The notes under the pieces are model-generated. The model was given only the letters and a program-made list of their open reading frames with translations, was not told the DNA's origin and did not search any database. A DNA stretch of 64,000 nucleotides from Convolutriloba macropyga (Eukaryota), in NCBI RefSeq assembly GCF_964194025.1, contig NC_134482.1, positions 1,178,001 through 1,242,000 of the forward strand, written 5' to 3'. Both the position numbers and the translations under genes were made by a program. Below, piece by piece: positions 4,665 to 60,400 of this stretch; positions within the stretch are counted from its first letter, which is position 1; every line of letters begins with the position of its first letter.

Positions 4665-4812
4665 NNNNNNNNNNNNNNNNNNNNNNNNNNNNNNNNNNNN
4701 NNNNNNNNNNNNNNNNNNNNNNNNNNNNNNNNNNNNNNNNNNNNNNNNNNNNNNNNNNNNNNNNNNNNNNNNNNNNNNNNNNNNNNNNNNNNNNNNNNNN
4801 NNNNNNNNNNNN
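4665..4812. other. Assembly gap (148 N)
   Basis: Run of N. Confidence 1.
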
Positions 4813-6700: not shown

Positions 6701-7059
6701 ATTGTTCTTTACCTAGTCCTCTTCCATCAGTAGAATTCCAATTCTGTGCTAAATAGCTTCAACAAACCTTACATAATAGGTTAAAATCCAGAAGCATTCG
6801 AGATTTAATTCAAGGTTACCATCTTATAGTATATTTTGTCTCAATGGTCATGAGATGGCCCTAATTTGTGTTCGTTTCAAAGGTTGTTTTACCCTGTAGA
6901 TACTTCATCTTTTTCAGCATTAATTTGTTTGTTTTGTTTTTGAGCTTTGTAGTAAAGCTTTCTTTTCATCAACTTTTTATTTTATTTCTTCGATTTTTTT
7001 CTACTCCGTTGGGCATAAATAAAAAAAACGTTGAAGTTGAAGTATAAGATCAAACGCAA

Positions 7060-7730: not shown

Positions 7731-8319
7731 ATTGACAATTTCTCTTTCTCTGCAAAAACTATTAAGTATACTAAATCCTTGATCTTGAATTTAAACGTTT
7801 TTTTTTTAAAATTCTATACTTTTTTGTGATTCTCACTCGACCGTTTTGATATGTGAATATCGAATTGAGCATACAAACTACTGATTACAAGAGATTGGCT
7901 GGCTCAATTTCAATGTTTCAGTAGAACGCAAGCTAGAAAAACTATCGCTGAGATTACAGGTAAAACTATTCGGCAGCTAAAATATATTTTTAAAACACTG
8001 CAAAAAAACCCGTAAAATCAAGTAACCAATACACCGATTACCTTAAACCTTCTGACTTTATTAAAACTTTGAAGGACTTGTCGTTAAAAAAAGTCCAGTA
8101 AACTCCAATGCTATTATTTCAGTGCACGACTGTTTATGTTCATTTATTTTATCTTAGAAAAACACATCGACGAGAAAATTTTTTTGTCTGGACAATTTTA
8201 AAAACTACATCTTTTGTTGACGTTAAAAAGCCGTTGGGTTAATTCTTTCGTGAGATAAGTGAGACAATATAGTCAAACGTTGTGATAAAATTTTGTTATA
8301 AGTTTTTCACAACAATTTC

Positions 8320-36645: not shown

Positions 36646-36965
36646 TCAGGAGAGCGTTGGATTGTACGTAATTCCTGTTGGCAAGTAAATGACACTGTGG
36701 GTATTGCATCCTTGAATTGGGATTTTAGTCCACTGTGTTTTGCAAATGTCATTTGGTTTCTCGTCTTTCCTTATTTTCAAAGTGACATTTGTGATTGCTT
36801 TGAATCCGTAGTCGTCTCCGAGTTTGGTAATCGGAAAGCTATAATATTCGCCTGTGCATTCTGCGGACACGTTTTTTTGGTTAAATTGAATGTGATCGGC
36901 TCTTAGTTTGGCTTCGCTGTTGTATCTGCGAATGAGTTCCTTCGCAGCTTCTAAGTGATTGTTTT
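36646..36965 (-). CDS. Secreted Cys-containing protein A (unknown family), coding exon 2
   Basis: Acceptor tttttttcag, phase 1 matching exon 1; ENNHLEAAKELIRRY...SAECTGEYYSFPITKLGD...DICKTQWTKIPIQGCNTHSVIYLPTGITYNPTLS*; homologous to protein B. Confidence 0.85.
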
Positions 36966-36985
36966 CTGAAAAAAATACACGTTAA

Positions 36986-37144
36986 TAGTAATGTGCATAT
37001 GGGCTTACAGGGGCAGGGGAGGCCCTGTAAATTTTTGAATTTTTTAACAAATGATTGATTATACTGTGAATAAATTTTAGAAATTTTAGAAATTATACGT
37101 CTCCCCTCCCCTGGACCTGTAACCCGCCCATATACACATTACTG
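36986..37144. mobile_element. 159-bp MITE with TTAA target duplication
   Basis: TIRs tagtaatgtgcatatggg / cccatatacacattactg, flanked by TTAA on both sides (36982-36985, 37145-37148). Confidence 0.75.
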
Positions 37145-38228
37145 TTAATTACCGATTTAATTAAATCGAGTGGATGGTAATTGGTCCTTGCATTAAATTC
37201 TCGATTACTGCAACTCGGGTTTCACAAGGCTTAAAAACTTTTGATCGACATCGAAAGGAATGAGTTTCAGAAGAGTCAGAAAAAGACATTGCACACAAAT
37301 TATCAACAGGATTCAACCACAATATCTGCTGTTTTCTTCTGAGAGCATATGTAAATCGTGAAATTATCATCACGTTTAATGCATAGGTTTAAAAAATTAT
37401 TATGCAAAAGCTTTTAATTGATCAGTTTTAGCGCTTATTATGTTCTATTCAATTGGTTGTGATAAAATCATCTCTATAAAAATGCTAAAAGCTGATTATT
37501 TTAGAACTAAAATAAATTTGTTTTCAATGTATTGTTAATTAAAGTTATCAGAAAAAATCGAGATTAGTTGGAGATGTGGTGCAGTCTAATTACCATTGCT
37601 GTCTTAAAGATGGGCCTCGCTGAAATGAGGCAATGAAACACCCCACTGAAATGAGACTTTGAATTTGAGAATTTTTAAACCTGCTTAATTGAACTATTAC
37701 AAAAGAAATTATCTGAAAAGAAAGTAGTAGACATTTTTGGAATCCAGCTAATATTTTGTATGCAATGTTATTTTCAACTCTTTCGGAGTACTCATTCCTT
37801 TCGATGTCGATCAAATTTTTTTAAGCTTTGCTGGGCCCTAGTCGCAGTAATTGAGTATTTTGGGCTCGGACAGACCAAAAGGCTTAATTTGATTTAATTC
37901 ATAAGCACACAAACGTTGTCAATCTAACAAGCCTTTTTTGTCTGCGCGTCAATGGCATCAATTTTTTCTCAGACAACTAGCACACCTTAACAATTAACTG
38001 AGACAAAAATCAACACTGAAATTAAAATTTGGGATTATATGTTGAAACGTAACTAAGCAAGTGAGTTGAATTGATTTAACCAACAAGTGAATTGTTCAAG
38101 CAAATGAGATGTTTTGGCAACATGATTGGGTTAGAGCCGGCATCAACCTTTTGTGTGGCGATAGCCATTTTCCTAGCCCGATATTGAATGTTAGGTATGG
38201 TTTAGGCAATCAATTTATATTTACTCAC

Positions 38229-38409
38229 CCTTGTTGTATCTTTCCCACAATGTGTTAGCCAGTTCCTTCAATGGGGCTGTGCAGTTGTTGCCTGTATTAA
38301 CGACCTGAACGACAGGAACTGCAAAGCAAACACTGAGCAGCCACGATAGCATTACAACCATCAAGTTGAGGTTGCAAATGGGCAACCTGACCAAGTATCC
38401 GAGATCCAT
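38229..38409 (-). CDS. Secreted Cys-containing protein A, coding exon 1 (signal peptide)
   Basis: MDLGYLVRLPICNLNLMVVMLSWLLSVCFA|VPVV..NNCTAPLKELANTLWERYNK; consensus donor GTGAGT at 38228; alternative ATG at 38361. Confidence 0.8.
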
Positions 38410-39424
38410 TGCACGTTTAGATTGTAGAGCGAGTTTCTTCTCCACTGAGATGGTTTCTGGTTATTTTCTGACTGTCGAGTTTTCTTAACAAGACTTCTCA
38501 AGGGGCTGAGTTCTGGTAATTCTCTGACTTCAAGTTATCTTTTGTCAAGATGCTGAGTTCTGGTTTATTTCTGACCGGCGAGTTTCTTTTAGCGAGTATG
38601 TTGAATGTGAGTTTTTGGTGGTTAGATCGATTGAGTAAACGTATTGGAAATTTAGACTGAATCAAGATTAATTTTTTTGAATTTAAATCTTTTAAAAGAT
38701 TCCAACTGAGCTGGGAGTGAACAAAAAAGGTTTATGAGAGATAGTGGGTCTGATCTTTTCTTCATACTTTCGGTCGTCGCCATAATAACGACACTTGAGC
38801 TGAAAATTAACAATATTTTTCAATATACCTTTTAGTACTTACGTTAATACCACTTGCACAACACTTATCAAATAAAATGCTTGTTTTGTTGACTGAAAAG
38901 AGAGAAAGCTGTAAAATTACATCACTTTTGTGTCAAGTATCAGATTACGCACTCTTTTTTGGTCATTGATACAGGCCCCCATGATCTCTATTAGCGAAAT
39001 TAGTCTAACGTGTTGACATTAGCAGTTTTTTTTGCCTTTTGTTGCCATTTTAGGCAAAAGAATTGAGCCGAATTGACATAAGTTTTCGGCTGCAAGATTT
39101 TGCAATGCACGAATTTACAAAGTAAACTCTAGCCGTAAATTAACTATTAGAATAAAATTAATTTAAGGCTTTACCGACAAATTTGACCGAAGACTATTGT
39201 TAGTCCAAATATTTTTTAAAAAAATCAACAAATTTAAGTAAGGCTGTCTTTTTCCTGGAGAAGTGTTCTCAAATTTTTAACGTCTCCGAGAAAGTAATAC
39301 CATAATAAAACCCGATCTCCAAGAATCTCTTCTAAACACGCCGGGAAACCACATCAGCTGAAATAACTAACAGTTTTTGGGTCTTTTCCAATATAGTCCC
39401 CGTTATAGTATATTTATCGTAATT

Positions 39425-39502
39425 GAGAGAGAGAGAGAGGTATGTATTTGTGTGTGTATGTGTGCGTGCGTGTATGTGTGCGTACGCATGTTTGTGTGTG
39501 TG
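39425..39502. repeat. (GA)n/(GT)n compound microsatellite
   Basis: gagagagagagagagg followed by degenerate tgtgtg/tgcgtg. Confidence 0.9.
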
Positions 39503-40077
39503 GCGCGGGGGTGAGGGGCTGTTATGTGAAAGATCCCAATTTTTCGAGAATTGTGGCAATGGCTCGTGAATCCGAAAAAAAGATAGGAAATAAGACGTTA
39601 TGATCTCTGCTGTGATTCATATTACTTAACTTAAAACTTGAGTAGTATTTGTACTGTACTGAATTAGGACTTTCAAATCGACTACTGGTATAATGCTATC
39701 GCTCTCTGTATCAGAGCGAGCAATAACTCAGCTTTTTGAAACTGGGATCCGAATATCGAAAATTTTGGGCGAATAGGCAAAGGTGACTTCAATAGCAAAT
39801 CAAGTTATCTTTTGTCAAGATGCTGAGTTCTGGTTAATGTCTTGATGAACAATTGCTGGAAACCAAAAGCCTAAAAAGAAGAAAACAAATGGTGGATTAA
39901 GGATCCTTAGAAAAAAAAATTGGCCTCGTTTTCGACTCTTTTGGTTTTAATGTATACATAATGAAGTTGATGCTGGCTTAAAGCTCCCAAAGTAAGTTTC
40001 GCTTCGCTCCTCAAACTTAAAAAATAACTAAGACAGTTTTTTGGAAAATTGTATTGGAAGCACACAATCTGAGTAGA

Positions 40078-43000
40078 TTTAACTAAATTTTGGATAAATT
40101 GACGTCATCTAAGCCAGTTTCAGCCTTTTTTGTCCTTATTCTGTAAAAACAGAGGCCGTGAACATATTTATGCAGCCTGAAAAATTTTGAATGTTCGCAG
40201 AATGCTTCCCTCTGAGGGTTCAAAGTTATGTTGACATTTTTTGTCGCGTTTCACTCTTGGTTGCATTTGCATCATGTCAAATATTCTCATTTAAACTCTT
40301 TGTTGGGAAAAAGGCGCCATAAAGGCTAACGTAACGTAAAACTTAATTTTAAAATTATAATGATAAGAATTGCAAAGTTTTGCCAAAATGCGTTTGTGTT
40401 GTATAAAATTTTGAAGTGTTTTTGAGAAAACTATAGGTGTAATGAAAAGCTTCCATCAAAAATATAGGCATGTTTTACTTTTACTTTGAGAAAACTTCTA
40501 GGTCCGAATGTTGGTACTATGTTGGTCCAAATGTTTCGTACTATCAATTTTTTCACTTTGCTGAAATCAGTAAGGTTATGACGATCGTTGAAAAATAAGT
40601 CCATGTAAAGCAGGGTAACAATACGAAGAACTTGAAGTTGAATTAAATGCAATAAATGTCCTAGAGACAAAATTAAGTTCAAAATTTTGTGAATTATCTT
40701 TTGGCATGTCAGTTTGTTTTGTTTGACAGACAAGAAGAACTACTGTATATATTAACAATTATGACGCATTGATGTGCCTGTAGCATAATCAGACAAAAAT
40801 TGTTCAAAATAGATTTGCTTCTGAGATCCCGAATGTGGATTTATTTGTCATTTGTAGATGTTTTGTGGTTTAAGCGATGTTTGTTGTCTTGTTTAATTTA
40901 TTGAAACAGATCTTCCATTAAGGTTTTCAATAAATGTTCGGAAACATTTTTTCGGGTTTTTGTTAACTACTATGTCTAAAGATATAAAAATGGCATTCTT
41001 TTTCTAATTTTTCAAAAAGATTTTTTTGCGCTGTTGGTATTTGTTAATTGATGTGCAATACAATTGATGTGAAATGTACATTTAATTTTGCCCAATGTCT
41101 CTTTAATAGCCGCACAGCAATAGCTGGGGCTATTATTGGCCTTCGCTTGATTTTTTACAATTCAAAGAGTTTTTACAATTCAGAGAATTTGAATTGTATT
41201 GGGGCGCTGTCTTTTTTCTTTTTTTAAAGATCTGTTCACACATTTTCATGATTTTTGTAGTCAAATTGGAGTAGTGATTAATAGCCGCACAGCGCTAGCT
41301 GGGGCTATTATTGGCCTTCTTCCGGTTTTTTATTTCGTCGTCGCGATTTTACGACCATATGACGTCACAACCACTTCAAATCTGCTTTTTGTGCATTCGG
41401 TCACGCAATTTCAACTGAAGTGCGTGTGTGACGTCATTTTTCGCTCTTAGTGGAGCGATTTTTTTGTCCATTTGCGTGATTAACTTTTTGGTCACACTTG
41501 ACTTACCTCACTCTCAAAAATGACTTCCTGACTCTAAAATTGGCTTCTCTTTGCTATAATTCAAAGAGATAAGGTCAAATGAGTGCGTGTCACTCTAAAT
41601 GAAGGTTATTTAAGAGCAGCTAATAGAGGCAGCAAAAATTTATACAGATTTTTAATCAAAATATAACATATCAGCCTTCAATGAAAAGACGAATTTTTTG
41701 GTCAGTCCTTTACCGTTTTTTTGAGATTGCAGATCTACAAAGCTATTGCGGCTATTTTCTGGCAATCTGCCAATTATGTTTTTCGTCACGCCGAAAAAGG
41801 AAATGGAGTGAAAAAGCAATTGGTTTTGAGGCGTGAAATTTTTTCGCTCTAACTTTAGAGTAGAGTGAGAAAACGGTGTTTCAACAAAAATTCGCTTTCT
41901 CGCTAGTGGATTTTTGTTCAGTTTTTTTTCAATTTTTTTGGATAGGATTTTTTAATATGGTTTTCCCCAATCCATTCATAGGTCATTTGAGCCTAGTTTT
42001 TTGTTTGAGCCAAATTTCCATTTCTCTCACACGCGTTTTTCGTTCACACGCGGCATTTTGACATTGATTTTCAGTTTTTTTGTTTTGTTTGATCTGATTT
42101 GTTTAGAAATAGTTTTCCCAATTCAATTATACTCCGTTTTGGGTCTAGCTTTTTGTTTAGTCTATGAAAACTCTTTGAATTGTACATCAGGACTTGTCCT
42201 GCTATGTTTTTTTATTTCGACCGTCATGATTTTTGTTACGACCATATGACGTCACAACCACTTCAAATCTGCTTTTTGTTCATTCATTCATGCAATTTTA
42301 ACCAGAGTGCGTGTGTGACGTTATTTTTTGCTCTCCGTGGAGCGAGTTTTCGTTCATTCGCGTGATTAAATTTTTGGTCACACTTGACTTACCTCACTCT
42401 CAAAATTGACTTCCTGACTCTAAAATTGGCTTCTCTTAACTATAATTCAAAGAGATAAGGTCAAATGGATGTGTGTCACTCTAATTGAAGGCTATTTGAA
42501 AGCAGCTAATAGAGGCATCAAAAATTTATACAGATTTTTAATCAAAATATAACATATCAGCCGTCAATGAAAAGACGAATTTTTTGGTCAGTCTTTTACC
42601 GTTTTTTTGAGATCGCAGATCTACGAAGCTATTGCGGCTATTTTCTGGCAATCTGCCAACTATGTTTTTGATCACGCCGAAACAGGAAATGGAGCGAAGA
42701 AGCAATTGGTTTTGAGGCGTGAAATTTTTTCGCTCTAACTTTAAAGTAGAGTGAGAAAACGGGGTTTGAACAAAAATTCGCTTTCTTGCTAGTGGATTTT
42801 TGTTCACATGCGGCAATTTGACTTTGATTTTCACTGTTTTTTTTTCAATTTTTTTTGATAGGATTTTTTAATATAGTTTTCCCCAATCCATTCATAGGTC
42901 ATTTTAGCCTAGTTTTTTGTTTGAGCCAAATTTCCATTTCTCTCACGCGTTTTTCGTTCACACGCGGCATTTTGACATTGATTTTCAGTTTTTTTGTTTT

Positions 43001-46000
43001 GTTTGATCTGATTTGTTTAGAAATAGTTTTCCCAATTCAGTTATATTCTGTTTTGGGTCTAGCTTTTTGTTTAGTCTATGAAAATTCTTTGAATTGTACA
43101 TCAGGACTTGTCCTGCTATGTTTTTTTATTTCGACCGTCATGATTTTTGTTACGACCATATGACGTCACAACCACTTCAAATCTGCTTTTTGTTCATTCA
43201 TTCATGCAAAATTAACCAGAGTGCGTGTGTGACGTTATTTTTTGCTCTCCGTGGAGCGAGTTTTCGTTCATTCGCGTGATTAAATTATTGGTCACACTTG
43301 ACTTACCTCACTCTCAAAAATGACTTCCTGACTCTAAAATTGGCTTCTCTTAACTATAATTCAAAGAGATAAGGTCAAATGGATGTGTGTCACTCTAAAT
43401 GAAGGCTATTTGAAAGCAGCTAATAGAGGCATCAAAAATTTATACAGATTTTTAATCAAAATATAACATATCAGCCGTCAATGAAAAGACGAATTTTTTG
43501 GTCAGTCTTTTACCGTTTTTTTGAGATCGCAGATCTACGAAGCTATTGCGGCTATTTTCTGGCAATCTGCCAACTATGTTTTTGATCACGCCGAAACAGG
43601 AAATGGAGCGAAGAAGCAATTGGTTTTGAGGCGTGAAATTTTTTCGCTCTAACTTTAAAGTAGAGTGAGAAAACGGGGTTTGAACAAAAATTCGCTTTCT
43701 TGCTAGTGGATTTTTGTTCACATGCGGCAATTTGACTTTGATTTTCACTGTTTTTTTTTTCAATTTTTTTGGATAGGATTTTTTAATATAGTTTTCCCCA
43801 ATCCATTCATAGGTCATTTTAGCCTAGTTTTTTGTTTGAGCCAAATTTCCATTTCTCTCACGCGTTTTTCGTTCACACGCGGCATTTTGGCATTGATTTT
43901 CAGTTTTTTTGTTTTGTTTGATCTGATTTGTTTAGAAATAGTTTTCCCAATTCAGTTATATTCTGTTTTGGGTCTAGCTTTTTGTTTAGTCTATGAAAAT
44001 TCTTTGAATTGTACATCAGGACTTGTCCTGCTATGTTTTTTTATTTCGACCGTCATGATTTTTGTTACGACCATATGACGTCACAACCACTTTTTGTTCA
44101 TTCGTTCATGCAATTTCAACATAAGTGCGTGCGTGACTGCATATTTCGCTCTTAGTGGAGCACGTTGTTTTGTTCATTGTCGTGATTAAATTTTTTTTCA
44201 CACGTGACTTACCTCACTCTCAAAAATATCTTCCTGGCTTTGAAATTGACTTTTTGACTTATTTGACTTATTTACTTTAATTCAAAGAGATAAGGTCAAG
44301 TGAATGTGTCACTTCAAATCTGCTTTTTGTTCATTATTGCTTGCATTTTTAACCAGAGTGCGTGTGTGACGTTATTTTTGCTCTCCATGGAGCGAGTTTT
44401 CGTTCATTCGCGTGATTAAATTTTTGGTCACACTTGACTTACCTCACTCTCAAAAATGACTTCCTGACTCTAAAATTGGCTTCTCTTAACTATAATTCAA
44501 AGAGATAGGGTCAAATGGATGTGTGTCACTCTAAATGAAGGCTATTTGAAATCAGCTAATAGAGGCAGAAAAAACTTATACAGATTTTTTTTATCAAAAT
44601 ATAACATATCAGCCTTCAATGAAAAGACGTTTTTTTGGTCTGTCTTTTACTGTTTTTGTTTGACACTGCAATTCACTTCGTTTAACTAAATTTTGGATTA
44701 ATTGACGTCATCTAAGCCAGTTTCAGCCTTTTTTGTCCTTATTCTGTAAAAACAGAGGCCGTGAACATATTTATGCAGCCTGAAAAATTTTGAATGTTTG
44801 CAGAATGCTTCCCTCTGAGGGTTCAAAGTTATGTTGACATTTTTTGTTGCGTTTCATTCTTGGTTGCATTTGCATCATGTCAAATATTCTCATTTAAACT
44901 CTTTGTTGGGAAAAAGGCGCCATAAAGGCTAACGTAACGTAAAACTTCTTAATTTTAAAATTACAATGATAAGAATTGCAAAGTTTTGCCAAATTGCATT
45001 TGTGTTGTATAAAATTTTGAAGTGTATTTGAGAAAACTATAGGTGTAATGAAAAGCTTCCATCAAAAATATAGGCATGTTTTACTTTTACTTTGAGAAAA
45101 CTTCTAGGTCCGAATGTTGGTACTATGTTGGTCCAAATGTTTCGTACTATCAATTTTTTCACTTTGCTGAAATCAGTAAGGTTATGACGATCGTTGAAAA
45201 ATAAGTCCATGTAAAGCAGGGTAACAATACGAAGAACTTGAAGTTGAATTAAATGCAATAAATGTCCTAGAGACAAAATTAAGTTCAAAATTTTGTGAAT
45301 TATCTTTTGGCATGTCAGTTTGTTTTGTTTGACAGACAAGAAGAACTACTGTATATATTAACAATTATGACGCATTGATGTGCCTGTAGCATAATCAGAC
45401 AAAAATTGTTCAAAATAGATTTGCTTCTGAGATCCCGAATGTGGATTTATTTGTCATTTGTAGATGTTTTGTGGTTTAAGCGATGTTTGTTGTCTTGTTT
45501 AATTTATTGAAACAGATCTTCCATTAAGGTTTTCAATAAATGTTCGGAAACATTTTTTCGGGTTTTTGTTAACTACTATGTCTAAAGATATAAAAATGGC
45601 ATTCTTTTTCTAATTTTTCAAAAAGATTTTTTTGCGCTGTTGGTATTTGTTAATTGATGTGCATTACAATTGATGTGAAATGTACATTTAATTTTGCCCA
45701 ATGTCTCTTTAATAGCCGCACAGCAATAGCTGGGGCTATTATTGGCCTTCGCTTGATTTTTTACAATTCAAAGAGTTTTTACAATTCAGAGAATTTGAAT
45801 TGTATTGGGGCGCTGTCTTTTTTCTTTTTTTAAAGATCTGTTCACACATTTTCATGATTTTTGAAGTCAAATTGGAGTAGTGATTAATAGCCGCACAGCG
45901 CTAGCTGGGGCTATTATTGGTCTTCTTTCGGTTTTTTATTTCGTCGCGATTTTACGACCATATGACGTCACAACCACTTCAAATCTGCTTTTTGTGCATT

Positions 46001-49000
46001 CGGTCACGCAATTTCAACTGAAGTGCGTGTGTGACGTCATTTCTTAGTGGAGCGATTTTTTGTCCATTTGCGTGATTAACTTTTTGGTCACACTTGACTT
46101 ACCTCACTCTCAAAAATGACTTCCTGACTCTAATATTGGCTTCTCTTAACTATAATTCAAAGAGATAAGGTCAAATGAGCGCGTGTGACTCTAAATGAAG
46201 GTTATTTAAAAGCAGCTATTAGAGGCAGCAAAAATTTATACAGATTTTTAATCAAAATAAAACATATCAGCCTTCAATGAAAAGACGAATTTTTTGGTCA
46301 GTCTTTTACCGTTTTTTTGAGATTGCAGATCTACAAAGCTATTGCGGCTATTTTCTGGCAATCTGCCAATTATGTTTTTCGTCACGCCGAAACAGGAAAT
46401 GGAGTGAAAAAGCAATTGGTTTTGAGGCGTGAAATTTTTTCGCTAACTTTAGAGTGAGAAAACGGTGTTTGAACAAAAATTCGCTTTCTCGCTAGTGGAT
46501 TTTTGTTCACTGTTTTTTTTTTTCAATTTTTTTGGATAGGATTTTTTTAATATGGTTTTCCCCAATCCATTCATAGGTCATTTTAGCCTAGTTTTTTGTT
46601 TGAGCCAAATTTCCCTTTCTCTCACGCGTTTTTCGTTCACACGCGGCATTTTGACATTGATTTTCAGTTTTTTTGTTTTGTTTGATCTGATTTGTTTAGA
46701 AATAGTTTTCCCAATTCAATTATACTCCGTTTTGGGTCTAGCTTTTTGTTTAGTCTATGAAAACTCTTTGAATTGTACATCAGGACTTGTCCTGCTATGT
46801 CTTTTTATATCGACCGTCATGATTTTTGTTGCGACCATACGACGTCACAACCACTTCAAATCTGCTTTTTGTTCATTCATTCATGCAATTTTAACCAGAG
46901 TGCGTGTGTGACGTTATTTTTTGCTCTTCGTGGAGCGAGTTTTCGTTCATTTGCGTGATTAAATTTTTGGTCACACTTGACTTACCTCACTCTCAAAAAT
47001 GACTTCCTCACTTTGAAATAGACTTATTTACTTTAATTCAAAGAGATATGGTCAAATGGTTGTGTGTCACTCTAAATGAAGGCTATTTGAAAGCAGCTAA
47101 TAGAGGCAGCAAAAATTTATACAGATTTTTAATCAAAATATAACATATCATCCTTCAATGAAAAGACGAATTTTTTGGTCAGTCTTTTACCGTTTTTTTC
47201 AGATCGCAGATCTACGAAGCTATTGCGGCTATTTTCTGGCAATCTGCCAACTATGTTTTTGGTCACGCCGAAACAGGCAATGGAGCGAAGAAGCAATTGG
47301 TTTTGAGGCGTGAAATTTTTTCGCTCTAACTTTAAAGTAGTGTGAGAAAACGGGGTTTGAACACAAATTCGCTTTCTTGCTAGTGGATTTTTGTTCACAT
47401 GCGGCAATTTGACTTTGATTTTCACTGTTTTTTTTTTCAATTTTTTTGGATAGGATTTTTTAATATGGTTTTCCCCAATCCAGTCATAGGTCATTTTAGC
47501 CTAGTTTTTTGTTTGAGCCAAATTTCCATTTCTCTCCGCGTTTTTCGTTCACACGCGGCATTTTGACATTGATTTTCAGTTTTTTGTTTTGTTTGATCTG
47601 ATTTGTTTAGAAATAGTTTTCCCAATTCAGTTATACTCCATTTTGGGTCTAGCTTTTGTTTAGTCTATGGAAATTCTTTGAATTGTACATCAGGACTTGT
47701 CCTGCTATGTTTTTTATTTCGACCGTCATGATTTTTGTTACGACCATATGACGATCGTTAAAAAATAAGTCCATGTAAAGCAGGGTAACAATACGAAGAA
47801 CTTGAAGTTGAATTAAATGCAATAAATGTCCTAGAGAGAAAATGAAGTTCAAAGTTTTGTGAATTATCTTTTGGCATGTCAGTTTGTTTTGTTTGACAGA
47901 CAAGAAGAACTACTGTATATATTAACAATTATGACGCATTGATGTGCCTGTAGCATAATCAGACAAAAATTGTTCAAAATAGATTTGCTTCTGAGATCCC
48001 GAATGTGGATTTATTTGTCATTTGTAGATGTTTTGTGGTTTAAGCGATGTTTGTTGTCTTGTTTAATTTATTGAAACAGATCTTCCATTAAGGTTTTCAA
48101 TAAATGTTCGGAAACATTTTTTCGGGTTTTTGTTAACTACTATGTCTAAAGATATAAAAATGGCATTCTTTTTCTAATTTTTCAAAAAGATTTTTTTGCG
48201 CTGTTAGTATTTGTTAATTGATGTGCAATACAATTGATGTGAAATGTACATTTAATTTTGCTCAATGTCTCTTTAATAGCCGCACAGCAATAGCTGGGGC
48301 TATTATTGGCCTTCGCTTGATTTTTTACAATTCAAAGAGTTTTTACAATTCAGAGAATTTGAATTGTATTAGGGCGCTGTCTTTTTTCTTTTTTTAAAGA
48401 TCTGTTCACAGATCTGTTTTTAAAGATCTGGCAATCTGCCAACTATGTTTTTGGTCACGCCGAAACAGGCAATGGAGCGAAGAAGCAATTGGTTTTGAGG
48501 CGTGAAATTTTTTCGCTCTAACTTTAAAGTAGTGTGAGAAAACGGGGTTTGAACACAAATTCGCTTTCTTGCTAGTGGATTTTTGTTCACATGCGGCAAT
48601 TTGACTTTGATTTTCACTGTTTTTTTTCAATTTTTTTGGATAGGATTTTTTAATATGGTTTTCCCCAATCCAGTCATAGGTCATTTTAGCCTAGTTTTTT
48701 GTTTGAGCCAAATTTCCATTTCTCTCCGCGTTTTTCGTTCACACGCGGCATTTTGACATTGATTTTCAGTTTTTTGTTTTGTTTGATCTGATTTGTTTAG
48801 AAATAGTTTTCCCAATTCAGTTATACTCCATTTTGGGTCTAGCTTTTGTTTAGTCTATGGAAATTCTTTGAATTGTACATCAGGACTTGTCCTGCTATGT
48901 TTTTTATTTCGACCGTCATGATTTTTGTTACGACCATATGACGTCACAACCACTTTTTGTTCATTCGTTCATGCAATTTCAACATAAGTGCGTGCGTGAC

Positions 49001-52000
49001 TTCATATTTTGCTCTTAGTGGAGCATGTTTTTTTGTTCATAGTCGTGATTAATTTTTTTTTCACACGTGACTTACCTCACTCTCAAAAATAACTTCCTGG
49101 CTTTGAAATTGAGTTTTTTTGACTTATTTGACTTATTTACTTTAATTCAAAGAGATAAGGTCAATCGAATGTGTCACTTCAAATCTGCTTTTTGTTCATG
49201 ATTTCTTGCATTTTTAACCAGAGTGCGTGTGTGACGTTATTTTTTGCTCTTCGTGGAGCGAGTTTTTGTTCATTCGCGTGATTAAATTTTTGGTCACACT
49301 TGACTTACCTCACTCTCAAAAATGACTTCCTCACTTTGAATTAGACTTATTTACTTCAATTCAAAGAGATAAGGTCAAATGGATGTGTGTCACTGCAAAT
49401 GAAGGCTATTTGAAAGCAGCTAATAGAGGCAGCAAACACTTATACAGATTTTTTATCAAAATATAACATATCATCCTTCAATGAAAAGACGTTTTTTTGG
49501 TCTGTCTTTTTTTACTGTTTTTGTTTGACACTGCAATTCACTTCATTTAACTAAATTTTGGATTAATTGACGTCATCTAAGCCAGTTTCAGCCTTTTTTG
49601 TCCTTATTCTGTAAAAACAGAGGCCGTGAAGATATTTACAGCAGCCTGAAAAATTTTGAATGTTCGCAGACTGCTTCCCTCTGAGGGTTCAAAGTTATGT
49701 TGACATTTTTTGTCACGTTTCACTCTTGGTTGCATTTGCATCATGTCAAATATTCTCATTTAAACTCTTTGTTGGGAAAAAGGCGCCATAAAGGCTAACG
49801 TAACGTAAAACTTAATTTTAAAATTATAATGATAAGAATTGCAAAGTTTTGCCAAAATGCGTTTGTGTTGTATAAAATTTTGAAGTGTTTTTGAGAAAAC
49901 TATAGGTGTAATGAAAAGCTTCCATCAAAAATATAGGCATGTTTTACTTTTAGTTTGAGAAAACTTCAAGGTCCGAATGTTGGTACTATGTTGGTCCAAA
50001 TGTTTCGTACTATCAATTTTTTCACTTTGCTGAAATCAGTAAGGTTATGACGATCGTTGAAAAATAAGTCCATGTAAAGCAGGGTAACAATACGAAGAAC
50101 TTGAAGTTGAATTAAATGCAATAAATGTCCTAGAGAGAAAATGAAGTTCAAAGTTTTGTGAATTATCTTTTGGCATGTCAGTTTGTTTTGTTTGACAGAC
50201 AAGAAGAACTACTGTATATATTAACAATTATGACGCATTGATGTGCCTGTAGCATAATCAGACAAAAATTGTTCAAAATAGATTTGCTTCTGAGATCCCG
50301 AATGTGGATTTATTTGTCATTTGTAGATGTTTTGTGGTTTAAGCGATGTTTGTTGTCTTGTTTAATTTATTGAAACAGATCTTCCATTAAGGTTTTCAAT
50401 AAATGTTCGGAAACATTTTTTCGGGTTTTTGTTAACTACTATGTCTAAAGATATAAAAATGGCATTCTTTTTCTAATTTTTCAAAAAGATTTTTTTGCGC
50501 TGTTAGTATTTGTTAATTGATGTGCAATACAATTGATGTGAAATGTACATTTAATTTTGCTCAATGTCTCTTTAATAGCCGCACAGCAATAGCTGGGGCT
50601 ATTATTGGCCTTCGCTTGCTTTTTTACAATTCAAAGAGTTTTTACAATTCAGAGAATTTGAATTGTATTAGGGCGCTGTCTTTTTTCTTTTTTTAAAGAT
50701 CTGTTCACACATTTTCATGATTTTTGAAGTCAAATTGGAGTAGTGATTAATAGCCGCACAGCGCTAGCTGGGGCTATTATTGGCCTTCTTTCGGTTTTTT
50801 ATTTCGTCGTCGCGATTTTACGACCATATGACGTCACAACCACTTCAAATCTGCTTTTTGTGCATTCGGTCACGCAATTTCAACTGAAGTGCGTGTGTGA
50901 CGTCATTTTTCGCTCTTAGTGGAGCGATTTTTTTGTCCATTTGCGTGATTAACTTTTTGGTCACACTTGACTTACCTCACTCTCAAAAATGACTTCCTCA
51001 CTTTGAATTAGACTTATTTACTTCAATTCAAAGAGATATGGTCAAATGGATGTGTGTTACTCCAAATGAAGGCTATTTGAAAGCAGCTAATAGAGGCAGC
51101 AAAAACTTATACAGATTTTTTTATCAAAATATAACATATCAGCCTTCAATGAAAAGACGTTTTTTTGGTCTGTCTTTTTTTACTGTTTTTGTTTGACACT
51201 GCAATTCACTTCATTTAACTAAATTTTGGATTAATTGACGTCATCTAAGCCAGTTTTAGCCTTTTTTGTCCTTATTCTGTAAAAACAGAGGCCGTGAAGA
51301 TATTTACAGCAGCCTGAAAAATTTTGAATGTTCGCACAATGCTTCTTTCTGAGGGTTCAAAGTTATGTTGACATTTTTTGTCGCGTTTCACTCTTGGTTG
51401 CATTTGCATCATGTCAAATATTCTCATTTAAACTCTTTGTTGGGAAAAAGGCGCCATAAAGGCTAACGTAACGTAAAACTTAATTTTAAAATTATAATGA
51501 TAAGAATTGCAAAGTTTTGCCAAAATGCGTTTGTGTTGTATAAAATTTTGAAGTGTTTTTGAGAAAACTATAGGTGTAATGAAAAGCTTCCATCAAAAAT
51601 ATAGGCATGTTTTACTTTTAGTTTGAGAAAACTTCAAGGTCCGAATGTTGGTACTATGTTGGTCCAAATGTTTCGTACTATCAATTTTTTCACTTTGCTG
51701 AAATCAGTAAGGTTATGACGATCGTTGAAAAATAAGTCCATGTAAAGCAGGGTAACAATACGAAGAACTTGAAGTTGAATTAAATGCAATAAATGTCCTA
51801 GAGAGAAAATGAAGTTCAAAGTTTTGTGAATTATCTTTTGGCATGTCAGTTTGTTTTGTTTGACAGACAAGAAGAACTACTGTATATATTAACAATTATG
51901 ACGCATTGATGTGCCTGTAGCATAATCAGACAAAAATTGTTCAAAATAGATTTGCTTCTGAGATCCCGAATGTGGATTTATTTGTCATTTGTAGATGTTT

Positions 52001-53805
52001 TGTGGTTTAAGCGATGTTTGTTGTCTTGTTTAATTTATTGAAACAGATCTTCCATTAAGGTTTTCAATAAATGTTCGGAAACATTTTTTCGGGTTTTTGT
52101 TAACTACTATGTCTAAAGATATAAAAATGGCATTCTTTTTCTAATTTTTCAAGAAGATTTTGTTGCGCTGTTGGTATTTGTTAATTGATGTGCAATACAA
52201 TTGATGTGAAATGTAAATTTAATTTTGCTCAATGTCTCTTTAATAGCCGCACAGCAATAGCTGGGGCTATTATTGGCCTTCGCTTGATTTTTTACAATTC
52301 AAAGACTTTTTACAATTCAGAGAATTTGAATTGTATTAGGGCGCTGTCTTTTTTCTTTTTTTAAAGATCTGTTCACACATTTTCATGATTTTTGAAGTCA
52401 AATTGGAGTAGTGATTAATAGCCGCACAGCGCTAGCTGGGGCTATTATTGGCCTTCTTTCGGTTTTTTATTTCGTCGTCGCGATTTTACGACCATATGAC
52501 GTCACAACCACTTCAAATCTGCTTTTTGTGCATTCGGTCACGCAATTTCAACTGAAGTGCATGTGTGACGTCATTTTCCGCTCTTAGTGGAGCAATTTTT
52601 TTGTCCATTTGCGTGATTAACTTTTTGGTCACACTTGACTTACCTCACTCTCAAAAATGACTTCCTGACTCTAAAATTGGCTTCTCTTTACTATAATTCA
52701 AAGAGATAAGGTCAAATGAGTGCGTGTGACTCTAAATGAAGGTTATTTAAAAGCAGCTATTAGAGGCAGCGAAAATTTATACAGATTTTTAATCAAAATA
52801 TAACATATCAGCCTTCAATGAAAAGACGAATTTTTTGGTCAGTCTTTTACCGTTTTTTTGAGATTGCAGATCTACAGAGCTTTTGCGGCTATTTTCTGGC
52901 AATCTGCCAATTATGTTTTTCGTCACGCCGAAAAAGGAAATGGAGTGAAAAAGCAATTGGTTTTGAGCCGTGAAATTTTTTCGCTCTAACTTTAGAGTAG
53001 AGTGAGAAAACGGTGTTTGAACAAAAATTCGCTTTCTCGCTAGTGGATTTTTGTTCACCGTTTTTTTTCAATTGTTTTGGATAGGATTTTTTAATATGGT
53101 TTTCCCCAATCCATTCATAGGTCATTTAAGCCTAGTTTTTTGTTTGAGCCAAATTTCCATTTCTCTCCGCGTTTTTCGTTCACACGCGGCATTTTGACAT
53201 TGATTTTCAGTTTTTTGTTTTGTTTGATCTGATTTGTTTAGAAATAGTTTTCCCAATTCAGTTATACTTCATTTTGGGTCTAGATTTTTGTTTAGTCTAT
53301 GGAAATTCTTTGAATTGTACATCAGGACTTGTCCTGCTATGTTTTTTATTTCGACCGTCATGATTTTTGTTACGACCATATGACGTCACAACCACTTCAA
53401 ATCTGCTTTTTGTTCATTCATTCATGCAATTTTAACCAGAGTGCGTGTGTGACGTTATTTTTTGCTCTTCGTGGAGCGAGTTTTCGTTCATTCGCGTGAT
53501 TAAATTTTTGGTCACACTTGACTTACCTCACTCTCAAAAATGACTTCCTCACTTTGAAATAGACTTATTTACTTTAATTCAAAGATAAGGTCAAATGGAT
53601 GTGTGTCACTCTAAATGAAGGCTATTTGAAAGCAGCTAATAGAGGCAGCAAAAACTTATCCAGATTTTTTATCAAAATATAACATATCAGCCTTCAATGA
53701 AAAGACGTTTTTTTGGTCTGTCTTTTTTTACTGTTTTTGTTTGACACTGCAAATCTACTAAGCTATTGCCGCTATTTTTTGGCAATCTGACAGCTATATT
53801 TCGGT
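40078..53805. repeat. Young mosaic tandem array (modules A ~1.2 kb, B HINE body, C ~0.5 kb; B+C period ~914 bp, A+B period ~1668 bp)
   Basis: Marker gaccatatgacgtcacaaccac recurs near 41353, 42240, 43154, 44069, 45956, 46833, 48932, 50822, 52490, 53374; module A starts near 40078, 44681, 49546, 51213 (partial at 47748); identical translated ORFs at 40431/45037 and 49966/51634. Confidence 0.97.
41278..41783 (+). mobile_element. HINE/DINE-1-like element embedded in the array (full copies also from ~45884 and ~52425)
   Basis: 5' hairpin TAATAGCC-GCA-CAGC-GCTA-GCTG-G-GGCTATTA; subTIR AATAGCCGC / GCGGCTATT; 3' hairpin TGGCA-ATC-TGCCA then TTATGTTTTT; empty site visible at 33895-33930. Confidence 0.7.
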
Positions 53806-54152
53806 TTTCGTTGATTTATTCCTCTTTGAGCATATCAGATGCCATAGTTATGGGACACAATTAGAAAAACTGCGAGCATATAAACATTAAAGTATTAAAA
53901 TTTATTTTAATTTTGCTCAATGTCTTTTTCAGTTATCAGGTGCCATTGTTATGAGATGCCATAGTTATGAGGACACAATTGAAGAACTGCTCTTTTTTAT
54001 AATCTTTGAAAACAATACCTTTAGTTTAAAAATTATAATTTTTAATTCATGAATAAATTGGCGAACGTTTTCTTATCTGTAGATGGTAAAATTTCGTGTC
54101 AAGATGCAATGCCTTGAGCACTAATTTGGTGTAAAAGTTCAGAATGATATCT

Positions 54153-54279
54153 ATTTTGCACTGTTTTCTGCAATTTTGCACTGTTTTCTCCCATTTTGCA
54201 CTGTTTTCTCCCATTTTGCACTGTTTTCTCCCATTTTGCACTGTTTTCTCCCATTTTGCACTGTTTTCTGCAATTTTGC
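54153..54279. repeat. 20-bp minisatellite (ATTTTGCACTGTTTTCTCCC) x ~6
   Basis: Directly visible tandem repeat. Confidence 0.97.
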
Positions 54280-55014
54280 TGTCATGTCTTGTGTTTTTCC
54301 AATAGACTTTACTTTCAGAAACTGTGGGATTCAAAGTCCTCTCTGGTTTAAGATTAGCTGCTGTTTAAGGATAAGATTGGTCAGAGCATTATGCGAACGA
54401 GCTTTATCGAGAATGTTTTAACTTTGGAAATAAAACTATTTAAGTTACTTTGACTACAAATATTTGGGCTGTTCAATTTTTTAGTCAAGAGGGTTTTTAT
54501 TACTGTAGCTGCACAAAGGTGTCGCAGCTAATTTGCGGCAATTCTGTCTGCTGTTTTAAGATACTCATAGGCAACGTCTGACACCCTTCTATTTCGTTTT
54601 CTTATAAAACTTCGAAATAAGAGCGCTTTCCATGCTTTCAGATTTTACGTTTCGTCATTCTCAGTTTGTTGCTTAAAACTTTTTTTGCTTTTGGTTATCG
54701 AAAAACGATAAGATGGTGAGACGTGTGCACATGTTTCGGACGAACTTTTTTTATATCTCGAAATTTTTTGCAACTTTTTTGTGTACTTATGAAACTTTTG
54801 GTTGGCTAGGCTTGATAGCTTCAAAGTGATGCTACAATAACTGTTTTGTGTTTTTTTAAATTATATCAAGAAAATTTGTGCTGTTTTTGAAATATAAAGA
54901 CAATGGTTAACGTAAACATTAAAGCTATAATATTTACTGCAAATATAGACAAATTGTACAAGCAATATTGTAAACTAATATACTGCTACGTATATATTTT
55001 TAGCTTTTTTGTAA

Positions 55015-55221
55015 TTATTGAGTTCTCGTTGTCTGATTGGCTGAATGTTCTGGTCTAATTTGGACACTAGTTGGGAGATAAATGAGCTCCTGTTCTGATC
55101 CACAGATTTCTACTTCTATCTGTTGCCACACACTCTCGCAAATTGTGGTGTTTTGGGGGATTATAACTGCCACGTTTTTGGACGAGGTCTCTATTTGCAA
55201 ATGATCACCCATTTTGTCAAC
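55015..55221 (-). CDS. Secreted Cys-containing protein B (paralog of A), coding exon 2
   Basis: Acceptor ttgttttag, phase 0; VDKMGDHLQIETSSKNVAVIIPQNTTICESVWQQIEVEICGSEQELIYLPTSVQIRP...*. Confidence 0.85.
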   Translation of the reverse strand, partial: VDKMGDHLQIETSSKNVAVIIPQNTTICESVWQQIEVEICGSEQELIYLPTSVQIRPEHSANQTTRTQ

Positions 55222-56176
55222 CTAAAACAATAAGGATCAGATCAATTATATTTTCACATTTTTGGAACAAGAAAACATCTAATAACAAGCTGTTCATAGT
55301 TTTACCAGTCATAAGTAATATTTACATTCTATTTTTCGAACTTTTTCGTGACTTGAATTGTGATAAGATATAGGCGATGCAAAATATGTTTTTTTTGTGC
55401 ATCACTATTTAAGTACAGTAAAAATTAACAGCAAATATCTATCAATTTAAAAAGTGCCGTGAGAAATTAGCTGAAAAGAACAAAATCCGTATTAACTTGG
55501 TTCATGAGATAGTTGTTCAAATCAGCCAAAGTTTGTTGCTATATTCCTTGTGCGTTTTGATTAAGCATATCATACCGTTTTAAACTTAAACCTAATGTAG
55601 AACTTTTTTTTACAAATGAAAATAATGATAATGGCAGAAGTATAGGAAAATTGGTATAAACTTTTAAAAGGTATATTTGAAGAGAATGTACATGCGAAAA
55701 GCACCAAAATCTGACACAAGTAGCAAAAGTTCTACAGAAAGCAGGAAAAAATAACAACGTGAGTAGCTGATGAATTTGAATTTTTAACCAAACTTTTGAT
55801 TTTAAATTTAAGGAAAATTTAATCACTTGTTAAGTTTTGGTATTATATTTTCCTGGTGTCACCTATAGTAAATTTGTGTAAAATGCCTGTTAGGCAATGA
55901 GCGAAGCTTGCAGAAGGAAATGCATTTCAGTTCCCTCAACTTCAAAATAGGTCAAAAATTGTCTCAATTTAATATATCGTAACAGCACCTTTTGTGAAAC
56001 TGTACTCGCTATATTACCTTTGATATCAGCCCGTTTTGAAAAAGCTCTTGAATTTTGTTATAATTGTTCACAGATTTTAATTCGCAAATGCTGCAAGTCA
56101 ATATTTTGAAAATTGAGTGCTTGAGTTGTTTCTTAAATGATTTCAAAAATTTTTTGAAGATTATTATGATTCTTAC

Positions 56177-56476
56177 CTGAAAGCAATAAACTTGCGAGCA
56201 TTTTGGGTGTTTAATTCCATTTATGCACTCGACATGGCTGCCCAGCCTAGATTGGAACTCAGGGTGTAACAGAAGCCCACTTCGTTTCAATAGCTGTTTC
56301 TCGACTTCCAAATATTTTCCATGTTTGTAAGAGTTGTTCAGATCCTTCACAAATTTTCTGGTTTCAGAGCAGTGCGCGTTAGTTGATTGACTAGTAAAAG
56401 CCACTGCTGTTTTGAGTGCAGCTCCTAACATAACAAAAGTTTGAATTATTAACTGGAAATTATTAAGTTTACACAT
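56177..56476 (-). CDS. Secreted Cys-containing protein B, coding exon 1 (signal peptide)
   Basis: MCKLNNFQLIIQTFVMLGAALKTAVA|F..AHCSETRKFVKDLNNSYKHGKYLEVEKQLLKR...PKCSQVYCFQ; exactly 100 codons, then donor GTAAGA at 56176. Confidence 0.85.
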
Positions 56477-57471
56477 TTTTGAACCGGTTATCGGTGCTAA
56501 AAAATGTTGGGCTATTGTTAAAGATATTTTGGGCTAAATATTTTCTTGGAGGCTTTTTATGCCGCTGTTTTTGTTTGTTTTTAGGTGTTAAATGAAAAAT
56601 AAAAGTTACCTGTTCGCTCCATTCGCAATATTGAATGAAGTTGATCGTTTCACGCAAAAACTGCGAAAGTTTACACCTGACATTATCATCAGATAAACGT
56701 CACTTTTTAAGTTGTTTTAATTTATACAGACGATTTCTTTGCTTAATTGAGCTAGAACTTAAAAGTTAATCTGACTTTCTTTCGAATTGTTTACCAAGCT
56801 TGTTGTATTAATCACTACTGTTTATGATAGTTAGCTGGTAGTTTTATTGAATTACCATTGCCATAATGGTTATTACTTCGAACACAATCGATGGTGTGAG
56901 CTCTCAAAAATAACATAGATATAATCCATTAAAGCAGTATTCGTTGAAACAGTCATAAAATAATGTTTTGGTGATTGCGGTAGTCAGTGGTCTTAATTCG
57001 CTGCTGTTGATTTCACTTCTTCAAGACAAGCTGTAAGCGCAACTTAGATTCTGGTAACTTTTGCGCCATTATGTTGATATAATTACATCATTGTAAAGAA
57101 CCATCTCTCGTAGTGTACTTTACTTGCGACGGGGCCAAAAATATTTTCTCTAGCATGTTGTGTTACGATGATGTCATGTAAAAACGGGATTGATTTGGTG
57201 GCGCTCGAAAACGAACCGAAAGGCAGAACCATTAGTATTACTTACTATTAGTCATAATTTAAAGCCATTCTTTTTCAAAGTTTTGCAAGTTTGACTGTAA
57301 TTGTTATTGAATGCGTGTGATCAAATGTCGTTTTTGTGTGACGTCAAATATGCACTCCCCGATTGTATCAAATAATTGAATTGATCGATTAAATGATACA
57401 ACAGCGATGAAAGCCAGTACTTCCAAGTCAGCTTTCAATTTTTTAGGTGTTGACAACTATGGCGTGATTAG

Positions 57472-60400
57472 TGACGTTTAACATTATCGCTGATTTTTTT
57501 TTATGACTCACTGGAGTAATAACACAGTGTTCTAACTTGAACCTTAGCCGAAAAAATTAACAGTGGTTTCAGCATGAAATAGTAGTTTTATGGCTCGAAT
57601 ATTAAAGAGCTTATCAATCATCGGTTCTCCTAGACAGCTAATAATCTCGGGGTCGGATTTATTACTTAAATAATTTGAAAGCTTCACTTCTGAGGTATGG
57701 TTTGTTCTAGACAACTGAATTTTGGCCGAAAAGGATCTCACTGGCATTTGAGAACTTCTAATCAAGATACTGCTGAAATTGCCTCAGATTAATTTTTTCT
57801 TTTTGATTGTGTAATGAATTTGCGTGTCTTTTCGTATTGAGCAGCGGGAGTAGTAATAGAGTGTTGTGTATCAATACTAGGGGGTCCACGGTGTGTAAAA
57901 AGCGACCCCTCAGTTTTGGCCGAAAATTTGATGATCTCTGATCGAGAGACTACGGTATTGGAACAGCAACGCCATGGGGGTCTCTCTCGGTTTCCTTCAG
58001 CAAAAACCAAGTTTGTAATACCCCCATCAATTTCATCTCTCGTAACGCGGTTATTCATTTAAAGAGCATGTCAATTTTAGCTAACGTCTGTTTACTGCAA
58101 CTACAATTTGTGAAATGATCTTGCCAAATGGATTTCTTCCAAACGCTTGTTTCGAGTTCGTCTTCATATAATGTCCCATCGCGCCCAAGCGCTTTTCAGG
58201 AAAATTTTAGGCGGATATATTTACAAGTAAACGTTTAGAGGTGATCGTTTTTTTACACACCGTGGACCCCCCCCCTTCTCCCTAGTATTGATACACAGCA
58301 CTCCTATTACTACTAGCGAAATAAACTGGTCAACCCTGAAGTCATCAAGTCACTGAGCAGTTCTCTCAGAGCCTTACTAGTCTGTCCCTACTAGCTATTC
58401 CCTGAAAATGTTGAAGCTTCATAAATTTATAGGTCCAAGGGCAGTTTTTAAAGTTTGGCCCCCTCTCGCACTGCTCGTATAGGCGTAATCTCTGTGAAAA
58501 AAAATAAGGGGTGGATACCTCCCTTTTTGTCCCGTGTTATTTTTTCCTGGCCCACCCCACATTCTTGTCACCACCTCATAATTGAAGATAAGCACTCAGC
58601 CTAAGCTAGCGAAATACAAAGCCAACTCCTCGGTTATAGTTTATGATATCATGTATTTATATTCATTAATTCTAGTCCAGGTCCAACAATTTGACAGGAA
58701 GATTATTGAAACAAAGTGAAAGCTAAAATTTGAGCGGAATCTTTTGAGACAGGTGAAGAGCTCTTTAATCATGTAATGTTAAACAATGTTCTACCGTCAA
58801 ACCTCGATCAATTTTCAGATTTTTAGATTTTCAACTTAGTGCATAGGATCAGGAATATATTTGATTGTTTTTGATAGCTGTCGAACGATGGCTGAAGCAA
58901 TTATTGTGAACATGCCTGAATTTTAAGTAAAATTTTGGCTTATTTTGCTGTTTTTACTTTTTGAGTCACTTTTTCGCCCTTGACCTCGGCATTCGCGTGA
59001 TTTAATGCTGCATCGCATTCACAAGTGCCAGCACTTGAACCCAAATGGTGGCAGGTTTCTACTATTTTTTGGACAATTTATTGACGTTTAACATTATCGC
59101 TGATTTTTTTATGACTCACTGGAGTAATAACAGTGTTCTAACTTGAACCTTAGCCGAAAAAATTAACAGTGGTTTCAGCATGAAATAGTAGTTTTATGGC
59201 TCGAATATTAAAGAGCTTATCAATCATCGGTTCTCCTAGACAGCTAATAATCTCGGGGTCGGATTTATTACTTAAATAATTTGAAAGCTTCACTTCTGAG
59301 GTATGGTTTGTTCTAGACAACTGAATTTTGGCCAAAAAGGATCTCACTGGCATTTGAGAACTTCTAATCAAGATACTGCTGAAATTGCCTCAGATTAATT
59401 TTTTCTTTTTGATTGTGTAATGAATTTGCGTGTCTTTTCGTATTGAGCAGCGGGAGTAGTAATAGAGTGTTGTGTATCAATACTAGGGGGTCCACGGTGT
59501 GTAAAAAGCGACCCCTCAGTTTTGGCCGAAAATTTGATGATCTCTGATCGAGAGACTACGGTATTGGAACAGCAACGCCATGGGGGTCTCTCTCGGTTTC
59601 CTTCAGCAAAAAAATGTTGAAGCTTCATAAATTTATAGGTCCAAGGGCAGTTTTTAAAGTTTGGCCCCCTCTCGCACTGCTCGTATAGGCGTAATCTCTG
59701 TGAAAAAAAAATAAGGGGTGGAGACCTCCCTTTTTGTCCCGTGTTATTTTTTCCTGGCCCACCCCACATTCTTGTCACCCTCATAATTGAAGATAAGCAC
59801 TCAGCCTAAGCTAGCGAAATACAAAGCCAACTCCTCGGTTATAGTTTATGATATGTATTTATATTCATTAATTCTAGTCCAGGTCCAGCAATTTGACAGG
59901 AAGATTATTGAAACAAAGTGAAAGCTAAAATTTAAGCGGAATCTTTTGAGACAGGTGAAGAGCTCTTTAATCATGTAATGTTAAACAATGTTCTACCGTC
60001 AAACCTCGATCAATTTTCAGATTTTTAGATTTTCAACTTAGTGCATAGGATCAGGAATATATTTGATTGTTTTTGATAGCTGTCGAACGATGGCTGAAGC
60101 AATTATTGTGAACATGCCTGAATTTTAAGTAAAATTTAGGCTTATTTTGCTGTTTTTACTTTTTGAGTCACTTTTTCGCCCTTGACCTCGGCATTCGCGT
60201 GATTTAATGCTGCATCGCATTCACAAGTGCCAGCACTTGAACCCAAATGGTGGCAGGTTTCTACTATTTTTTTGGACAATTTATTGACGTTTAACATTAT
60301 TGCTGATTTTTTTATGACTCACTGGAGTAATAACAGTGTTCTAACTTGAACCTTAGCCGAAAAAATTAACAGTGGTTTCAGCATGAAATAGTAGTTTTAT

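Follow-up and report, generated by a model that had tools for sequence, protein, structure and literature searches.

Exploring a 64,000-nucleotide (nt) stretch of the genome of the acoel Convolutriloba macropyga (contig NC_134482.1, positions 1,178,001 to 1,242,000; this whole stretch is referred to here as the window), we found two small genes, A (LOC142354640; 166 amino acids, aa) and B (LOC142353974; 168 aa). With somewhat better than even confidence, we take them to be an old tandem pair whose family, hitherto undescribed and restricted to acoels, consists of small secreted glycoproteins that serve as soluble extracellular binding proteins or ligands. The DNA of the window is AT-rich and eukaryotic in character (GC ~0.35), with a run of N at 4665-4812, and both genes lie on its minus strand, ~17 kb apart, one on each side of a 13.5-kb tandem array; this arrangement, already given in the initial annotation, agrees with the coordinates, the splice sites and the identity to RefSeq (Table 1). 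The spliced products of A and B are identical to the RefSeq proteins XP_075263091.1 (P0001) and XP_075262328.1 isoform X1 (P0014), respectively, both of which are annotated as "uncharacterized protein". A profile search detected no third member of the family within the 64-kb window.

Smith-Waterman alignment of the two proteins was colinear with a score of 100, compared with 29.5 +/- 5.1 for shuffled sequences (n = 2000; z = 13.8), and z was still 13.2 when the signal regions were removed, indicating at the level of sequence that A and B are true paralogues. The pattern common to them comprises, in the N-terminal part, a cysteine where a helix begins and a helix pattern of L-x-x-x-Y and E-x-x-K-x-L, and in the rest of the protein C-x4-[CS]-F, G-D, then C-x3-W-x7-C and [IL]-Y-L-P-T. 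Family alignments gave the signature C1 ... C2-x7/8-C3-x4-C4-[FIL]-x ... [IV]-x-I-P ... C5-x3-W-x7-C6-x5/6-[IL]-[YHF]-L-P, from which gene A departs in lacking C2 and C4, so that the mature proteins carry four (A) and six (B) cysteines. Because orthologues and paralogues have six, we take this to be the ancestral number, one pair having been lost from A; the orthologue of gene A in another species retains both Cys2 and Cys4. The joint loss of these two residues in gene A suggests a Cys2-Cys4 disulfide bond, in which case C1, C3, C5 and C6 would be expected to bond with one another. The Kyte-Doolittle 11-residue maximum of the N-terminal hydrophobic segment is 2.1-2.7 in A and B, with no such segment later in either protein. 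In six full-length members the maximum lies at 1.7-2.9 in the first 25 residues and does not exceed 1.45 beyond them; one hydrophobic segment, placed at the N-terminus, is in keeping with a cleaved signal peptide. Sequons of the N-X-S/T type are found at N42, N92 and N120 of A and at N47, N124 and N162 of B. The initial annotation had described A and B as paralogues with a colinear signature, four shared cysteines, one extra pair in B, a signal peptide in each and N-glycosylation sequons, and the alignment, the cysteine counts, the hydrophobicity profiles and the three sequons per protein bear this out.

Database searches with A and B were carried out exon by exon and then with the RefSeq proteins identical to the spliced models. 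In Pfam, the A and B exon translations and all 13 rows of the family alignment matched no family at E <= 10, only noise being returned: PF06083 (IL17) gave no match with any of them, and PF00243 (neurotrophin), PF16077 (Spaetzle) and toxin, lectin or antimicrobial families were not among the matches. LysM_RLK, which appeared in Pfam at E 0.02-0.09, was discarded as noise. A profile search of PDB sequences revealed no relative (its best match, ATP synthase OSCP at E 0.37, was rejected), and a word-indexed protein search for which two exons and the alignment served as queries returned the genome's own proteins only. Matches from an ESM Atlas feature search, with scores of 0.83-0.87, were rejected given that shuffled proteins reach the same range. 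When 1.84 billion representative proteins were searched exhaustively with the profile, the matches were, in addition to the copies in the genome itself, four proteins from ENA assembly contigs, none of them with a Pfam match: P0005 and P0011 (177 aa), P0006 (161 aa) and P0008 (98 aa). The open reading frames of P0005 and P0006 are complete and contain no intron. Three giant proteins returned by the same search (P0007, P0009 and P0010) were spurious, their scores being sums over repeats that contribute 1-10 bits each on a cysteine-free Y-x-F-Q-L-x-D-x-G-D...T-V-x-V-P strand motif. Thus Pfam, PDB and the 1.84 billion proteins gave no described relative and none of the searches run gave a confident match to a described family, in keeping with the unrecognised, lineage-specific family that had been proposed from the DNA.

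The contig that carries P0005 (L016) is collinear with the window: a B orthologue is followed by the two exons of A, split by a phase-1 intron as in gene A, and then by a POU homeodomain exon. P0005 is 47-57% identical to gene B, and the POU homeodomain exons of the contig and the window are 38% identical over 116 aa. The contig also carries a satellite of ~314 nt (L016:8257-8570) that matches the C. macropyga genome (G000) with ~90% identity at more than 480 places. Given the collinearity and the common satellite, we concluded that P0005 is the B orthologue in another acoel; as read from this gene order, the A/B pair is older than the split of the two species. On L016 the distance from B to A is 4.3 kb (6535-10785) and the interval holds no tandem array, indicating that the array of the window is a lineage-specific expansion inside a conserved gene pair. 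No intron interrupts the B orthologue (L016 6001-6534). The phase-0 intron that gene B shares with three paralogues in C. macropyga would have been either gained before the expansion in this species or lost in the other lineage. For the contig carrying P0008, an A-type exon 2 (L019), matches to the genome are confined to PTPA exons (71-74% identity), and the scaffold of P0006 (1.5 kb, from a metagenome) has no DNA match to the genome. P0006 apart, the relatives met so far all come from acoel-like DNA. The 314-nt satellite is arranged in C. macropyga as long tandem blocks, which occur on many chromosomes (C1, C2, C10, C12 and others).

Comparison of L016 with L017 (two assemblies, related species) revealed differences in 2.7% of non-coding alignment columns, a rate that indel columns inflate somewhat, and in 2 of 1054 coding bases of the two family genes (binomial P ~2e-10), including 0 of 534 nt in the B orthologue; the contrast between non-coding and coding sequence is large. 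The coding sequence of the family is under purifying selection in the related species. Together, the conserved B-A-POU order and the near absence of coding polymorphism indicate that A and B are real genes under constraint. In the DNA runs of C. macropyga, variants were seen in the intron and 3' flank of gene B and none in its exons, their number being too small for a test.

Six-frame searches of the whole genome with the exons and with the family profile, the latter suggested in the initial annotation, revealed at least seven loci, A and B included. Three of the seven have the A-type intron (phase 1, inside helix 2), namely A, C3:20.71 Mb and C7:22.35 Mb, and four have the B-type intron (phase 0, after Y-C-F-Q), namely B, C7:0.96 Mb (C7a), C4:62.68 Mb and C10:61.37 Mb. 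In the paralogue at C7:22.35 Mb (C7b; LOC142342707, P0016) Cys1 is replaced by F and an extra cysteine lies in a 35-residue C-terminal tail, so its disulfide partner may have been swapped. The C10 copy (G000:C10:61374974-61375318; L011/L021) lacks an ATG and is interrupted by an in-frame stop where the signal peptide would lie, its exon 2 was not detected within 9 kb, and it may be a pseudogene; weak N-terminal matches of the hidden Markov model on L011 were ruled out as exons, being a K-rich repeat. The donor sites of the B-type loci (slash, exon-intron boundary) are CAG/GTAAGA in gene B, CAG/GCAAGG in C7a (L014:775-780), CAG/GCAAGT in C10 (L011 ~9052-9047, minus strand) and CAG/GAAAGG in C4 (L013:1000-1005). 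The GC donors of C7a and C10 are plausible, and the GA donor of C4, which would precede a 9.2-kb intron, would be non-canonical or dead. No RefSeq protein for C7a, C10 or C4 was found among the search matches. A maximum-likelihood tree of ten members was mostly unresolved with long branches; the groups resolved were the pair of C7a and C4 (98/98) and, weakly, a B-type clade (80/71).

AlphaFold2 models of mature A (8 alignment rows; predicted local distance difference test, pLDDT, 79; predicted template-modelling score, pTM, 0.73) and of mature P0005 (13 alignment rows; pLDDT 83, pTM 0.78; five models 78-83) agree in the order of their secondary structure: a pair of long helices at the N-terminus, then four to five strands that end in a long hairpin made by the final two. 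Foldseek returned nothing below E 0.5 with either model, and an Atlas shape search gave template-modelling (TM) scores of at most 0.36. Comparison of the P0005 model, independently of Foldseek, with 48,161 PDB representatives placed IL-17A (Z 3.7, 70 residues, 3.3 A), 6wio_C (Z 3.4) and IL-25 (Z 3.0) at the top, with NGF at Z 2.7 and Gremlin and sclerostin lower, scattered among unrelated rows. When its Foldseek list was re-aligned, the top 46 rows were all IL-17A/F (Z 3.3-4.1, 64-77 residues) and the next families were NT-4 (2.5), PTTH (2.3) and SOST (2.2). The best row of the gene A model among PDB representatives had Z 2.6, IL-17A being at rank 13 (Z 2.3), and of its 136 Foldseek chains, when re-aligned, neurotrophin-4 alone reached Z >= 2 (Z 2.2). 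A structural match is called meaningful by the search tool at Z >= 5. As modelled, the beta domain has, faintly, the general look of elongated cystine-knot-type cytokines, among which IL-17 stands out by rank in the better model. The link to cystine-knot cytokines such as IL-17, which the initial annotation had called speculative, stays speculative: the structural matches reach Z 2.2-4.1, no profile match was obtained, and the terminal CxC is absent, as that annotation observed, the last strand having no cysteine in any member. The check by AlphaFold and Foldseek likewise yielded models with a helical hairpin and a beta-hairpin domain and no Foldseek match below E 0.5.

If A and B are soluble extracellular binding proteins or ligands, an N-terminal signal peptide would direct them to the secretory pathway and leave a mature protein of ~125-140 aa, in which three disulfides would stabilise an N-terminal helical hairpin packed on an elongated domain of four or five beta-hairpin strands; the gene A product would have two disulfides, the Cys2/Cys4 pair having been lost. 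Such a protein, perhaps dimeric, would work extracellularly, either binding other molecules in soluble form or signalling as a ligand. We infer this role from the size, the disulfides, the glycosylation sequons and the elongated, growth-factor-like beta domain, and it is probably the likeliest mode of action, with a gland or secretory effector nearly as likely. Several points weigh against it. The disulfide pairing was deduced from correlated cysteine loss, the call of secretion from hydrophobicity, and the models of A and B from genomic DNA and RefSeq, with DNA runs as the only reads. Isoforms X2 and X3 of gene B, which do not have the hydrophobic core, would, if real, be predicted as non-secreted. 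The fold models come from shallow alignments (8-13 rows, some of them fragments), and all structural matches of these models lie well below the meaningful level (Z < 5; Foldseek E > 0.5). Lastly, no feature tells a signalling ligand apart from a gland or secretory product.

The latter is the strongest alternative, which we regard as possible but less probable: A and B would be bulk products of gland or epidermal secretion (mucus, rhabdoid- or sagittocyst-type, prey-immobilising or antimicrobial products, or factors for algal symbionts) with targets outside the animal. Signal peptide, disulfides and sequons fit such products equally well, and an expansion to seven loci in the lineage is typical of secreted effector or defence families. 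Taxonomic restriction and fast divergence, seen in the 47% identity between syntenic orthologues and in the long branches of the tree, would also be expected of them; however, the POU exon is no better conserved, indicating that the divergence is not unusually fast for this pair of species. Moreover, the family is small, its tandem pair has been kept in synteny, and it matches no toxin, lectin or antimicrobial family in Pfam, all of which count against the gland product.

An extremely divergent true homologue of IL-17, which would have lost the C-terminal C-x-C and gained the N-terminal helical hairpin, is unlikely. The new family and the IL-17 family (PF06083; IL-17A/F, IL-25) are alike in being small and secreted with a similar mature size, and the predicted beta domain consists of elongated paired hairpins whose best matches are IL-17A/F and IL-25: with the better model, IL-17A, 6wio_C and IL-25 lead all representatives, and the 46 best rows of the re-aligned list cover 64-77 of ~90-110 residues, the next family being ~1 Z lower. 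IL-17 has a C-x4-C motif on strand 2, which the knot pairs with a C-x-C on strand 4, and in IL-17A a cysteine of the N-terminal region and one in the loop of the long C-terminal hairpin link two chains. A C-x4-C motif is formed in the new family by Cys3 and Cys4, and this family also has a cysteine in the long C-terminal hairpin loop and one near the N-terminus. However, the IL-17 matches reach Z 3.3-4.1 only, at Foldseek E > 0.5, the gene A model does not single out IL-17, and PF06083 is not matched. The last strand (..[IL][YH]LP...) has no cysteine in any member, which makes both knot disulfides of IL-17 impossible, and the IL-17 domain does not include a helical hairpin such as the 40-residue one at the N-terminus here. 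In the genome, the IL17 profile gave no match in a search run without a positive control, and a six-frame search for SEFIR (PF08357) gave none at E <= 1, likewise without a positive control and with introns that may hide the domain. Membership in the IL-17 family thus fails on the profile match and the knot cysteines, and a faint resemblance of fold is what is left.

Ligands with a knot of the neurotrophin, Spaetzle or PTTH type share with the new family secretion, six cysteines and an elongated beta-hairpin architecture, and with the P0005 model NGF, NT-4, PTTH, Gremlin and sclerostin are found at Z 2.2-2.7. The implied Cys2-Cys4 bond would be a misfit with the I-IV, II-V, III-VI knot of neurotrophin and Spaetzle ligands, and the new family differs from these ligands in having no conserved dibasic site for cleavage of a pro-domain (KR in B, RE in paralogues). 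Toll-like receptors and the Toll pathway are reported to have been lost in acoels (PMC12849515). It is doubtful that acoels have kept a derived cytokine of IL-17-like or cystine-knot fold, in which the knot disulfides would have been replaced and a helical hairpin added, and which would signal through a non-canonical receptor. With orphan families of secreted, cysteine-containing invertebrate proteins the new family shares restriction to a clade, short length, a signal peptide, conserved cysteines, lineage-specific changes in copy number and annotation as nothing more than "uncharacterized protein"; it differs from them in that its synteny is conserved, its two-part fold is predicted with confidence and its six-cysteine signature is defined.

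That A and B are annotation artefacts or decaying genes without function is very improbable: the reads come from DNA runs only and show no splice joints, in the C10 copy a stop interrupts the frame and exon 2 was not detected, and C4 has a non-GT/GC donor, but the frames of A and B themselves are intact with canonical splice sites, paralogues and other species have kept the cysteines and core motifs, the syntenic pair in the other species has almost no coding polymorphism, and RefSeq arrived independently at identical models.

Acoels branch near the base of Bilateria, at a point that is much debated, and several conserved immune and signalling pathways are reported to be missing from them. A conserved, clade-restricted family of secreted proteins shaped like growth factors is a candidate for communication, specific to the lineage, between cells, between animal and symbiont or between animal and prey. 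With its signature, its gene structures, one syntenic pair of orthologues and two confident models in place, the family can be searched for in other xenacoelomorph data. If it proved to be an ordinary gland product, it would be one more orphan secreted family, of modest interest.

Table 1. Coordinates of genes A and B, and of the array between them, in the window
Feature	Position	Strand	Content or basis
Gene A, coding exon 1	38229..38409	-	Start codon, predicted signal peptide, Cys1, first helix
Gene A, intron (GT...AG, phase 1, 1263 nt)	36966..38228	-	Splice-site inspection
Gene A, coding exon 2 and stop	36646..36965	-	Helix 2, beta domain (Cys97, Cys135, Cys147, IYLPT motif); 100% identical to P0001
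Gene B (isoform X1), coding exon 1	56177..56476	-	Predicted signal peptide, helical hairpin, Cys1-Cys4
Gene B, intron (GT...AG, phase 0, 955 nt)	55222..56176	-	Splice sites; missing from syntenic orthologue P0005
Gene B, coding exon 2 and stop	55015..55221	-	Long beta-hairpin with Cys5, Cys6, IYLPT motif
Gene B, alternative 5' coding exon of RefSeq isoform X2 (MERT-G)	56610..56622	-	RefSeq model alone
Complex tandem-repeat array between A and B, units of ~0.9 and 1.67 kb	40172..53692	.	Context, outside both genes

Inspection of the exon boundaries showed that exon 1 of gene A ends in phase 1 (...AACAAGG/GTGAGT). The start of gene A (MD...) and the phase of its intron are kept in the orthologue on L016, and the position and phase of the intron are common to the A-type paralogues (L008, L015) and to other species (L016, P0008). 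Exon 1 of gene B ends in phase 0 (...TGCTTTCAG/GTAAGA). RefSeq isoforms X2 (MERTG...) and X3 (MTNR...) of gene B have alternative 5' exons that replace the first 17 codons; the X2 exon splices into an internal acceptor at ~56425/56424, whereby the hydrophobic signal core is lost. Both isoforms may be annotation noise. DNA reads over gene B (four DNA runs, one study) have even depth across the intron and contain no splice joints; public poly(A) RNA-seq of C. macropyga exists (BioProject PRJEB75559, PMC13650328).

Beyond gene B, the minus strand of the window carries two near-identical open reading frames (129-130 aa; MRVTRMWGGPGKNNTGQKG...) at 59395-59784 and 60598-60990, 1.2 kb apart, which are either a local duplication or a repeat element.

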